DNA from: Andalucia godoyi And28
Lineage: Eukaryota > Protista > Jakobida
Length of the DNA stretch: 64,000 nt
NCBI GenBank assembly: GCA_009859145.1
Contig: VRVR01000006.1
Span: 183,455 to 247,454, forward strand
Direction of reading: 5' to 3'
The translations under genes and the position numbers were made by a program. The notes below the pieces were generated by a model. The model was not told where the DNA came from. It saw only the letters and a list, made by a program, of their open reading frames with translations, and did not search any database. Positions 1-1,014 of this stretch are shown here, piece by piece (within the stretch, counting starts at the first letter, position 1; the number at the start of each line of letters is the position of its first letter).

Positions 1-1014
1 AAGATTCGCCTGCGGACCCACCGAAGAACAGAAGTTGAAACTTCATCAGATGTTCGATCTCTGGGGACGATGCGTATAACAACTGCGTCTTCCTTTACCA
101 GAAACGCAATGTCCCTGCAAGATCCCGAAAGATGGATCGACATGTTTTCCGAACCCCGACTCCAGGCTGACGAAGAACACGAGACGTTGTCCGAAATGCT
201 TCGTCGTGAAACCGCGAGACAAGCATTCCGATCTTCGCAGCTTCAAGGTTCCCAAGAATGGTGGAAAACCTCCCGTCCAATTGTCGGTCGAGGAAGGTGC
301 TGCTTTCTGGTCCACTTTCATTCCCGGAAGCACCATCAAATTGTGGAAACGAGGAAGGAAGGCGGAGCGTGAAATTCGACGGCTACGTGAGAAACCCCAA
401 GGTGGTAGTAGCGGCTCGGTTTTCAATGGCCTGCGCACGTGTTCCATTTCCTATGTCCAAGGACGATGCTTTTCCGATTGTCCCAGTCGCGCGATCCATG
501 GCACCACCCAAGACGAAAACCGGGGACATGATTGTCATCAACAGCTGCGATGGCGGAGGCCGTGTCTTCCAGACTGTTTATGATGGCTGTGGGAATTACA
601 AGGAATATGAGTTCTCCGAGGGCGACCCTTGACGCTGATCAAACCCCAGAAACGCTATCAGAAATTGCAATCGAGACGCGCCACCGAGACGACTCGCATG
701 TCGAAAAACGGCAAGACGGAATGCCCGGCGTAAGATGCGCAACATTTCGCACCGCATTCAGAACATGCAACATGATGGACATGTACACATTGCCAAGGCG
801 GTGTGCCAGAATGCTGATCATATCCTGCTCCCGCCATTGAACACCCAGAAGATGTGCCAGAAACAGAGTGAAGACGTCACAGTGTCCCCACGCGGGATGC
901 ACGTATTCGCAACCTCGTGACCAGCATGGTGCGAGAAACGTTGCGATCTTGGGTGTGGAATGTATTGGCATTGGAGTCTGCCAGCATCCAAGCCCCTTTT
1001 CATCCTCCTCGTAA
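1..1014 (+). mobile_element. Decayed Fanzor (TnpB-family RNA-guided endonuclease) pseudogene; anything upstream lies outside the window
   Basis: Motifs read across frameshifts, in the expected order. KIRLR (1-15, frame 1) plus one extra nt, then PTEEQKLKLHQMFD (17-58, frame 2) and YNNCV (75-89, frame 3) give the TnpB N-terminal 'KIRLYPT.EQ...L...F...R..YN' motif. IVINSCDGGGRVFQTVYDGCG is RuvC-I-like (Asp at 549-551). RIQNMQHDGHVHIAKAVCQNADHILLP (about 753-833) is the bridge helix with the Fanzor-type 'LLP' RuvC-II strand. CPHAGC...RDQHGARNVAI (883-948) is a Zn-finger half plus RuvC-III (Asp at 919-921). Stop at 1012-1014. Confidence 0.88.

Follow-up and report, generated by a model that had tools for sequence, protein, structure and literature searches.

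Results

Remains of a TnpB/Fanzor gene at positions 1–1014

The window analysed here is a stretch of 64,000 nucleotides (nt) of Andalucia godoyi And28 (contig VRVR01000006.1, forward-strand positions 183,455–247,454), and its first 1014 nt carry the damaged 3' part of a gene of the TnpB/Fanzor superfamily of RNA-guided nucleases. The segment had been described in the initial annotation as a Fanzor relic spread over three reading frames. All the strings quoted there were found in the three-frame translation of 1–1100, on the plus strand and in the same order: KIRLR at 1–15 (frame 1), PTEEQKLKLHQMF from 17 (frame 2), YNNC within 66–140 (frame 3), SCDGGGRVFQTVYD at 543–584 (frame 3), RIQN..H..IAKAVCQNADHILLP within 705–875 (frame 3), and CPHAGC...RDQHGARN at 883–942 (frame 1). 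The longer translation reads DDAYNNCVFLYQKR, starting at 66, and RIQNMQHDGHVHIAKAVCQNADHILLPPLNTQKM in frame 3, and CPHAGCTYSQPRDQHGARN in frame 1 at 883–942. No single open reading frame (ORF) in the ORF list of the window covered all of these strings.

The window pieces were searched separately and were never joined across stops; the frameshift-aware alignment described below matches an intact database protein with the DNA. In a phmmer search of 1.84 billion representative proteins, the 93-residue piece 639–917 matched P0001 (645 residues) with an E-value of 5e-13 and 54% identity, and also P0003 (559 residues) and P0004. When the intact proteins were compared with the window by tblastn, colinear high-scoring segment pairs running across frames +1, +2 and +3 were obtained with P0001 (4e-47), P0003 (7e-35) and P0006 (655 residues; 8e-49). 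The relic aligns in this way to intact metagenomic proteins of 559–680 residues (P0006/P0019, P0001, P0003). P0001 and P0003 have the PF07282 domain (Cas12f1-like TNB, formerly OrfB_Zn_ribbon) above the curated cut-off and a weak HTH_OrfB_IS605 match.

The background control covered all six frames of the whole window, whose 2,409 stop-to-stop pieces were each scored with hidden Markov models (HMMs). The five highest scorers with the HMM of the family were the five pieces of 1–1014, in profile order, with E-values of 5e-21, 6e-19, 3e-17, 3e-9 and 4e-5; the next piece had an E-value of 0.03. The piece 80–580 was one of the five (2.7e-17). Further HMMs were built from nine Fanzor2 sequences of the supplement of Bao & Jurka 2013 and from five Fanzor1 sequences. 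The piece 639–917, which scored 5e-21 with the family HMM, was also ranked first by the HMM of the nine published Fanzor2 proteins (7e-10), and the HMM of the five Fanzor1 proteins matched none of the window pieces. In the Pfam search of the separate pieces only HTH_OrfB_IS605 was obtained, below the threshold (E = 0.067), and a phmmer comparison of three pieces with the PDB sequences gave nothing relevant, the matches to BurrH and a phage tail-fibre protein at E > 0.1 being noise. The pieces failed to match Pfam and PDB because they are individually too short and too divergent. No further copy was found within the 64-kb window. The similarity is well past chance, and it is confirmed that 1–1014 is the relic of a TnpB/Fanzor gene spanning three frames. 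The features of the locus are listed in Table 1.

Table 1. Features of the relic and its 3' flank in the window. Residue numbers refer to the intact relative P0006.
Feature	Position (nt)	Strand	Frame	P0006 residues	Remarks
KIRLR, start of the conserved FK(I/M)RLRP motif	1–15	+	1	179–183	
PTEEQKLKLHQMFDLW, HTH_OrfB_IS605-like N-terminal helix	17–64	+	2	184–199	PF12323, E = 0.067; frameshifts at nt 16 and 65
DDAYNNCVFLYQKRNVPARSRKMDR	66–140	+	3	200–224	identity 19/25
C, then FPNPDSRLTKNTR	143–184	+	2	225–239	frameshift at ~141; deletion 1 at 184/185
WED/REC-like middle part, RCPKCFVVKPRDKHS...KVPKNGGKP...LWKRGRKAEREIRRLR...TCSISYVQGRCFS	185–475	+	2	299–411	
Annotated 124-residue "protein" P0015 (EukProt)	258–632	+			chimeric ORF
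RuvC-I segment, IVPVARS...GDMIVINSCDGGGRVFQTVYDGCGNYKEYEFSEG	477–623	+	3		catalytic Asp codon 549–551; frameshift 476 in a TTTT run
Linker helix, PLTLIKPQKRYQKLQSRRAT..TTRMS	626–703	+	2	468–492	frameshifts at ~624 and 704 (AAAAA run)
Long helix and RuvC-II strand, KTARRNARRKMRNISHRIQNMQHDGHVHIAKAVCQNADHILLPPLNTQKMCQKQSED	705–875	+	3		Pro codon 831–833 at the canonical-Glu position
Frameshift 876 and junction of deletion 2	876–882	+			residues 552–615 missing
Second zinc knuckle and RuvC-III, CPHAGCTYSQPRDQHGARNVAILGVECIG	883–969	+	1		Arg-Asp 916–921, Asp codon 919–921; E = 2.8e-9
C-terminal tail, IGVCQHPSPFSSSS	970–1014	+	1		TAA stop 1012–1014
Non-coding spacer separating the relic from the convergent nucleoside-hydrolase gene (3' end)	1015–1642	.			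GC 0.46

Damage to the gene

P0006 residues 179–644 were aligned with window positions 1–969 by frameshift-aware dynamic programming, and 172 of the 318 aligned codons (54%) were identical. As the alignment begins at residue 179, the N-terminal part of the gene, about 178 residues, falls outside the window. The native path of the P0006 alignment contained no in-frame stop. It was interrupted by seven frameshifts (nt 16, 65, ~141, 476, ~624, 704 and 876) and by two deletions, of 59 residues in the REC-like part (P0006 240–298, junction at nt 184) and of 64 residues (P0006 552–615, junction at nt 882). The second deletion took out the stretch I-V-x-E-x-Y-T-T-x-G-C-x-x-C, in which both the relocated catalytic Glu (E-x6-C) and the zinc finger's first CxxC are situated. 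Kept in the relic were the RuvC-I Asp, a Pro at the canonical RuvC-II Glu site, the second knuckle CPHAGC, and the Arg-Asp of RuvC-III. In the profile-to-PDB alignment the "hillP" of the family aligned with "itiE" of the ISFba1 TnpB structure 8iaz; the Pro encoded at 831–833 is thus placed at the canonical-Glu position by its alignment with the catalytic E of that enzyme, which agrees with the replacement noticed in the initial annotation. Of the domain layout given there, the RuvC-I Asp, the RuvC-II Pro and the RuvC-III Asp were found again, and the zinc finger is only half present owing to the 64-residue deletion. Both deletions had been overlooked and the copy is more damaged than was described.

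With seven frameshifts, the loss of the alternative Glu and a zinc finger reduced to one half, the window copy is unable to encode the enzyme and is a relic without present protein function. The TAA at 1012–1014 is probably the original stop of the gene, since the intact relatives terminate 11–13 residues past the IG(E/D)Y motif. In the spacer 1015–1642, the expected place of an omega-RNA or of the right end, nothing recognisable was seen.

At the junction of deletion 2, positions 877–917 can be read in two ways. Frame 3 gives VTVSPRGMHVFA, resembling VTVRAMHVWA of P0001, which lies 5' of the deletion, and frame 1 gives QCPHAGCTYSQPRD, the segment 3' of it. The match in frame 1 is solid; that in frame 3 may be due to chance or may be a trace of a microhomology-mediated deletion.

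Family assignment

The superfamily has been defined by the motif D-X(125,275)-[TS][TS]-X-X-C4 zinc finger-X(5,50)-RD (Bao & Jurka 2013, PMC3627910). In the window, the RuvC-I Asp lies in a D-x-G-x-R loop after a beta-strand and aligned with the D that is invariant both in the family and in the references, and the C-terminal RD is present in PRDQHGARN (913–939). The pattern [TS][TS]-x-x-CxxC...CxxC is lacking, as the YTT(K/Q)GCxxC half is deleted and CPHAGC is left, which is a matter of decay and not of non-membership. Independent profiles matched as well, both the piece 639–917 (published Fanzor2) and the relatives (PF07282 and PDB). Fanzors in the narrower sense are characterized by DPG in RuvC-I, a Glu six residues 5' of the zinc finger, and a eukaryotic or viral host (Yoon et al. 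2023, PMC10711439). The window has DGG in place of DPG and the Pro at the canonical Glu position; the segment with the alternative Glu, which is deleted there, is invariant in the intact relatives. The host is eukaryotic, the relic being contiguous with the genes of proteasome RPN2, MutS/MSH, condensin and Tectonic, and five window ORFs were exact singleton EukProt entries.

The profile of the intact relatives (A1) matched mimivirus Fanzor2 9b0l ("TnpB-like protein L79") over the whole RuvC/TNB half with an E-value of 3e-27, followed among the PDB entries by Cas12m, ISFba1 TnpB, Cas12f and ISDra2 TnpB; none of the Fanzor1 structures in PDB was matched. The family HMM gave 60–164 bits with all nine published Fanzor2 proteins, the best being chlorovirus ISvAR158_1 (164 bits), Feldmannia virus (130 bits) and Phytophthora PCa-3 (124 bits), and at most 7 bits with the five Fanzor1 proteins. 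The AlphaFold2 model of P0006, made with a 31-sequence alignment, reached a pLDDT of 73.8 and a pTM of 0.74 and was confident from residue ~170 on. Its closest PDB fold was again 9b0l (E = 6e-19, TM 0.64 on the target), with SpuFz1 at only about 1e-4, and according to this model the intact relatives fold like ApmFz2. In BFVD the fold neighbours of the model were giant-virus "transposases" (Pandoravirus, Klosneuvirus, mimivirus, phaeoviruses, CroV, chloroviruses and Bodo saltans virus), none of which exceeded 19% identity.

The prokaryotic alternative-Glu IS607 TnpBs were included in the tree, which was calculated by maximum likelihood (LG+C20, 475 columns). Fanzor1 was separated from all else at 100/100, and the window piece formed a clade with P0006, P0001 and P0003 at 100/99, on a long branch. 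The place of this clade within the assemblage of Fanzor2 and alternative-Glu IS607 TnpBs was a polytomy. As the HMM scores, the PDB profile, the fold match and the tree all agree, the relic is of the Fanzor2 type and belongs to a distinct, divergent Fanzor2-like clade. Membership in Fanzor1 was rejected in view of the low family-HMM scores, the blank result of the Fanzor1 HMM in the window, and the 100/100 split.

As a separate observation, two non-cyanobacterial metagenome-assembled genomes (MAGs) of Desulfobacterota type (L038, L047) had TnpBs in which DPG is combined with the alternative Glu in the arrangement E-x6-CxxC. DPG TnpBs occurred also in L051, L052, L077 and L078 (MAGs of Clostridia, Blastocatellia, Chloroflexota and Desulfobacterales), where the full zinc-finger pattern was not matched by the regular expression. 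These occurrences in non-cyanobacterial MAGs could reflect a real spread or MAG contamination.

Unusual motifs of the family

The RuvC-I loop reads SCDGGGRVFQT both in the window and in the intact P0006/P0019, CDSGAR in P0001, and VDPGVR in P0003; among the relatives DPG was found only in P0003 and P0007. Since the intact P0006 carries the same loop, CDGGGR is a trait of the lineage and not a result of decay, so that of the two explanations offered in the initial annotation, an undescribed subfamily or decay, the former was borne out. The second zinc knuckle of the intact relatives is C-x3/4-C (CPHGC, CPHEGC, CPRAGC), their RuvC-III reads RDQH(S/G)SR, and the spacing from the RuvC-I Asp to the alternative Glu is 155–172 residues versus 134–144 in the references. 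The D/E/D residues, in P0006 D436, E591 and D628, and the zinc cysteines are invariant among the intact relatives. Over their first ~170 residues the intact proteins are basic and show little order (e.g. TRKRTKSTQPKPRKKRQKT); in this they appear to resemble the functional nuclear localization signal (NLS) regions described for Fanzors (PMC10530073).

The family's own motifs were absent in the sequence set of Bao & Jurka (PMC3627910), and scanning 185,579 prokaryotic genomes with them yielded no relative. The regular-expression screen of Yoon et al. would miss the clade, because two of the three core members have a D-to-E spacing above 160 residues and the second knuckle departs from CxxC.

Sibling copies in A. 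godoyi

The annotated protein P0015 is a composite reading. Its first ~73 residues are an out-of-frame reading of the 185–475 segment, and its last ~50 residues are the RuvC-I piece. P0015 falls in a 90% cluster with ANDGO_03584, ANDGO_04189, ANDGO_02407 and ANDGO_06239 (EP00762 Andalucia godoyi), with ANDGO_03455 close to it; the profile search including the separate window pieces had likewise returned the short EukProt proteins ANDGO_03455 and ANDGO_03584. A. godoyi has at least six copies, the window included. The sibling ORFs are 59–115 residues long with differing start points, and in one of them the RuvC-I loop is mutated to CDGGD. The protein identity among the six RuvC-I pieces is 85–95%.

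The string MSKDDAF(P/L)IVPVARS was found in all six copies, and the same stop after SEGDP in four of the six. MSKDD is an out-of-frame reading of the ancestral YVQGR, and the string MSKDDAF(P/L)IVPV exists only with a +1 shift at 476, so the frameshift at 476 is common to all six copies. Together, this shared frameshift and the shared SEGDP stop indicate that the family multiplied after its inactivation. No full-length member of the family from A. godoyi was found in the protein searches. The invasion of the genome by a Fanzor family, assumed in the initial annotation, is thus seen in the at least six copies. As the proteome lacks any full-length member and all copies seen have the 476 frameshift, the hope of intact programmable nucleases in the A. 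godoyi genome is unsupported. P0015 and the five sibling "hypothetical proteins" look like artefacts of pseudogene annotation.

Intact relatives and their carriers

Only a small number of intact members is known, each from environmental sequencing and on unassigned metagenome contigs. Three independent datasets contained the P0006/P0019 genome with 100% identical nucleotides, namely L003 (Logan SRR18595301), L005 (JGI 3300037810, the 124-kb contig Ga0376277_0001042) and L087 (Ga0172379_10085579). P0001 is encoded at locus L001 and P0003 at L002, and P0020–P0022 are more distant. The genes around the intact relatives are tightly packed ORFans with almost no Pfam matches; in the L005-type genome, which is possibly that of an uncharacterised large DNA virus, Pfam matches were limited to TraB/PrgY/gumN and a weak F-box. 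No viral hallmark gene was seen among the neighbouring genes of the relatives, and no recombinase domain (IS607 TnpA) was found in the genes adjoining them. In the IMG/VR scan the single pieces gave nothing and the family alignment only L004, 22% identical; the metagenome scan gave only L087, of the same genome as L005, and one distant locus. The Fanzor ORF is the sole segment common to L001, L002, L005 and the window, the flanks being unrelated. Being shared alone among unrelated contexts, it behaves as a single-gene mobile unit.

Rest of the window

Outside the relic, the window consists of closely spaced eukaryotic housekeeping genes on both strands, nearly all of it free of introns, among them IU-nucleoside hydrolase (1643–2791, minus strand), RPN2, an MSH-type MutS, condensin Cnd2 and Tectonic. 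The genome as a whole has been described as compact and intron-poor, with a size of ~20 Mb (A. godoyi genome paper). A single ORF of 3,305 residues at 5757–15674 (plus strand) consists nearly entirely of ankyrin repeats (Ank_2, 19 stretches, E = 1.7e-180). The ORF of 2,878 residues at 50517–59153 (minus strand) is an exact EukProt entry and lies where the AT skew is strong and sustained, at +0.15 to +0.23 over 50–58 kb. Two ORFs of 290 and 279 residues, at 3113–3985 (minus) and 3248–4087 (plus), overlap almost fully on opposite strands; the Lys/Glu/Arg-rich plus-strand ORF is probably the real gene of the pair. The exact look-up gave no record for either of them, nor for 1646–2791. A perfect tandem repeat of 18 nt × 4.2 was found at 16014–16088 within the ORF 15791–17443 (minus), and a 7-nt repeat, CCTCGAT × 10, at 17591–17662 in the short spacer between this ORF and the ORF 17838–18554 (plus).

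Discussion

Proposed history of the relic

Considered as a whole, the data are very probably best explained by 1–1014 being the 3' two-thirds of a Fanzor2-type pseudogene in the nuclear genome of A. godoyi, which multiplied when already dead and whose source was likely viral. By homology, the ancestor would have been a protein of about 650 residues in which a basic, NLS-like extension at the N-terminus was joined to a WED/REC part and a split RuvC. Its triad would have been of the Fanzor type: the RuvC-I Asp, the alternative Glu placed six residues ahead of the zinc finger, and the RuvC-III Asp. TnpB and Fanzor proteins act as complexes with omega-RNA, which read the target-adjacent motif, pair the guide with the DNA and cut it by RuvC (PMC10432273, PMC10530073, PMC10711439, PMC11832414). 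The ancestor would similarly have bound an omega/reRNA transcribed from the 3' end of its own gene and cleaved matching DNA beside a target-adjacent motif, which would have helped the element to persist or home, as for TnpB and Fanzor. The intact relatives are putatively active nucleases, and the ancestor of the relic probably was one too.

The dead copies may have spread by trans-mobilisation as a non-autonomous element or by duplication of repeat-rich, possibly subtelomeric DNA, and the truncation right at base 1 would be in keeping with a scaffold terminating within a repeat. A giant virus or its mobile elements would be the most likely source, since the closest intact relatives sit singly in gene-dense, ORFan-rich, virus-like contigs.

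Several observations weigh against this history or limit it. Three of the seven frameshifts, at nt 65, 476 and 704, lie at homopolymer runs of at least four, the other four elsewhere, and the A. godoyi assembly is 454-based with Illumina correction (A. godoyi genome paper); on account of both, some of the frameshifts could be sequencing errors, which the two large deletions cannot be. The lesions common to the copies are established, at the protein level, for the 447–632 segment only. The upstream side lies beyond the window, and with it the left part of the gene, any transposase and the chromosomal position (a scaffold end?) are out of view. Nuclease activity of the intact relatives is a prediction only. 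That the contigs of the relatives belong to large DNA viruses is suggested only by their gene density and the lack of Pfam matches, and none of these contigs was found in IMG/VR. No convincing terminal inverted or other terminal repeats and no Rfam match in 1–1700 were found. No DNA 3' of the stop codon was conserved among the window, L001, L002, L005, L086 and L087, an absence which is weak given the few and distant copies.

Alternative explanations

The alternative nearest to this history is that the relic is debris of integrated giant-virus DNA, an endogenous viral element, in the subtelomeres, copied by recombination or duplication among chromosome ends. It overlaps with the history proposed above and differs from it in the vehicle and the mode of copying alone. 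It would account for the nearest intact relatives lying in ORFan-dense virus-like contigs, one of them of 124 kb, for giant-virus proteins being the structural neighbours, for the common inactivating lesions, and for the relic ending exactly at base 1 as if the scaffold stopped inside a repeat; subtelomeric "transposon/viral-like sequences" have also been mentioned (A. godoyi genome paper). However, ordinary host genes follow from 1643 on and the window has no other virus-like gene, tblastx of L005 against the window matched the Fanzor ORF only, and the unrelated contexts of this ORF in L001, L002 and L005 correspond to the behaviour of a single-gene mobile unit. We therefore regard integrated viral debris as possible but unlikely.

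Co-option by the host, in which the 124-residue ORF 258–632 or a transcript of the region would be functional, could explain why the ORF is annotated as a protein and why similar ORFs are kept at five other loci. It is nevertheless very improbable, as the N-terminal ~73 residues of the ORF are out of frame, the siblings vary in start and in length (59–115 residues, one with CDGGD), only one of the three catalytic residues is left in the piece, and Rfam gave no match.

It is still harder to believe that the gene is intact or nearly so and that the frameshifts are 454 homopolymer errors or assembly errors in a repeated region. The type of assembly and the three frameshifts in homopolymer runs would agree with this, as would the native path free of in-frame stops and the 54% identity to P0006, which is as high as that between intact relatives. 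Four of the seven frameshifts lie outside homopolymers, though, and the 59- and 64-residue deletions remove essential parts; the 476 frameshift recurs in six separately assembled, diverged copies and the SEGDP stop in four of them, and a long ORF of the family is missing from the A. godoyi proteome.

Finally, a chance or low-complexity match or contamination with a bacterial TnpB, to which the lack of Pfam matches (bar that at E = 0.067) and of meaningful PDB matches for single pieces might point, has practically no standing against E-values down to 8e-49, five colinear pieces, contiguous eukaryotic housekeeping genes, and the absence of any relative by family motifs from 185,579 prokaryotic genomes.

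A possible undescribed clade and the significance of the relic

Going beyond the proposed history of the relic, we tentatively put forward, as a possibility we would not yet lean on, that the relic, P0006/P0019, P0001, P0003 and perhaps P0020 form an undescribed deep Fanzor2-like clade. The carriers of such a clade would be large DNA viruses, as yet uncultured, that infect heterotrophic flagellates; the intact proteins would be active RNA-guided nucleases, and the A. godoyi copies would record a past exchange of DNA between virus and host. It would be distinguished by the DGG/DSG RuvC-I loop in place of the near-universal DPG, the C-x3/4-C knuckle, the long D-to-E spacing and the ~170-residue basic N-terminal extension, and, if real, would extend Fanzor2 to Discoba.

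As RNA-guided nucleases of eukaryotes and giant viruses, Fanzors are already known to be widespread, and one more decayed copy changes little. The present copy documents a Fanzor2-type family in a jakobid (Discoba); in the Fanzor surveys searched, no mention of jakobids or Discoba was found, and the range of Fz2 has been given as fungi, a few molluscs and choanoflagellates, and viruses (Saito et al.). Starting from the relic, a small and divergent clade was also reached, made up of intact proteins whose motifs in RuvC-I and in the zinc knuckle are non-canonical. The six A. godoyi "hypothetical proteins" merit re-annotation as pseudogene artefacts. For genome editing the window copy itself is useless.

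Comparison with known systems

The closest counterpart of known structure is ApmFz2 (mimivirus L79, PDB 9b0l, PMC11832414). Like the family, it has a residue other than Glu at the canonical RuvC-II position, a Glu placed six residues ahead of the zinc finger, and an extended N-terminus; that of ApmFz2 contains a functional NLS (PMC10530073). The identity between them is only ~18%. The family differs from ApmFz2 by DGG/DSG (or DPG) in RuvC-I, by the second knuckle CPHxGC of the C-x3/4-C type in place of CxxC, by RDQH(S/G)(S/A)R in place of RDxNAAxN, and by the 155–172 residues between the RuvC-I Asp and the Glu. Unlike ApmFz2, the window copy is a pseudogene.

The IS607-type TnpB/Fanzor2 proteins of chloroviruses and phaeoviruses (ISvAR158_1, FEsv-1) and of Phytophthora capsici (PCa-3) (PMC3627910) were the top scorers with the family HMM. 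They have in common with the family the motifs DPGVRTFQTTY (as in P0003), I(I/L)(I/L)PPF/LxTQKM and EEYTSKTC, but are shorter (351–483 residues), lack the ~170-residue N-terminal extension and showed no specific grouping with the family in the tree. The cyanobacterial IS607 TnpB "pro-Fanzors" (PMC10711439) resemble the family in the arrangement of the active site and belong to the same tree assemblage, whereas they are prokaryotic, have about 330–520 residues and the canonical CxxC...CxxC finger, and their D-to-E spacing is 134–142. Fanzor1, represented by SpuFz1 of Spizellomyces punctatus (PDB 8gkh) and the oomycete families PUl/PSo, is of the same superfamily and follows the same RNA-guided RuvC logic, but stands clearly apart from the family by HMM score (at most 7 bits), by fold (SpuFz1, ~1e-4) and by the 100/100 split in the tree.

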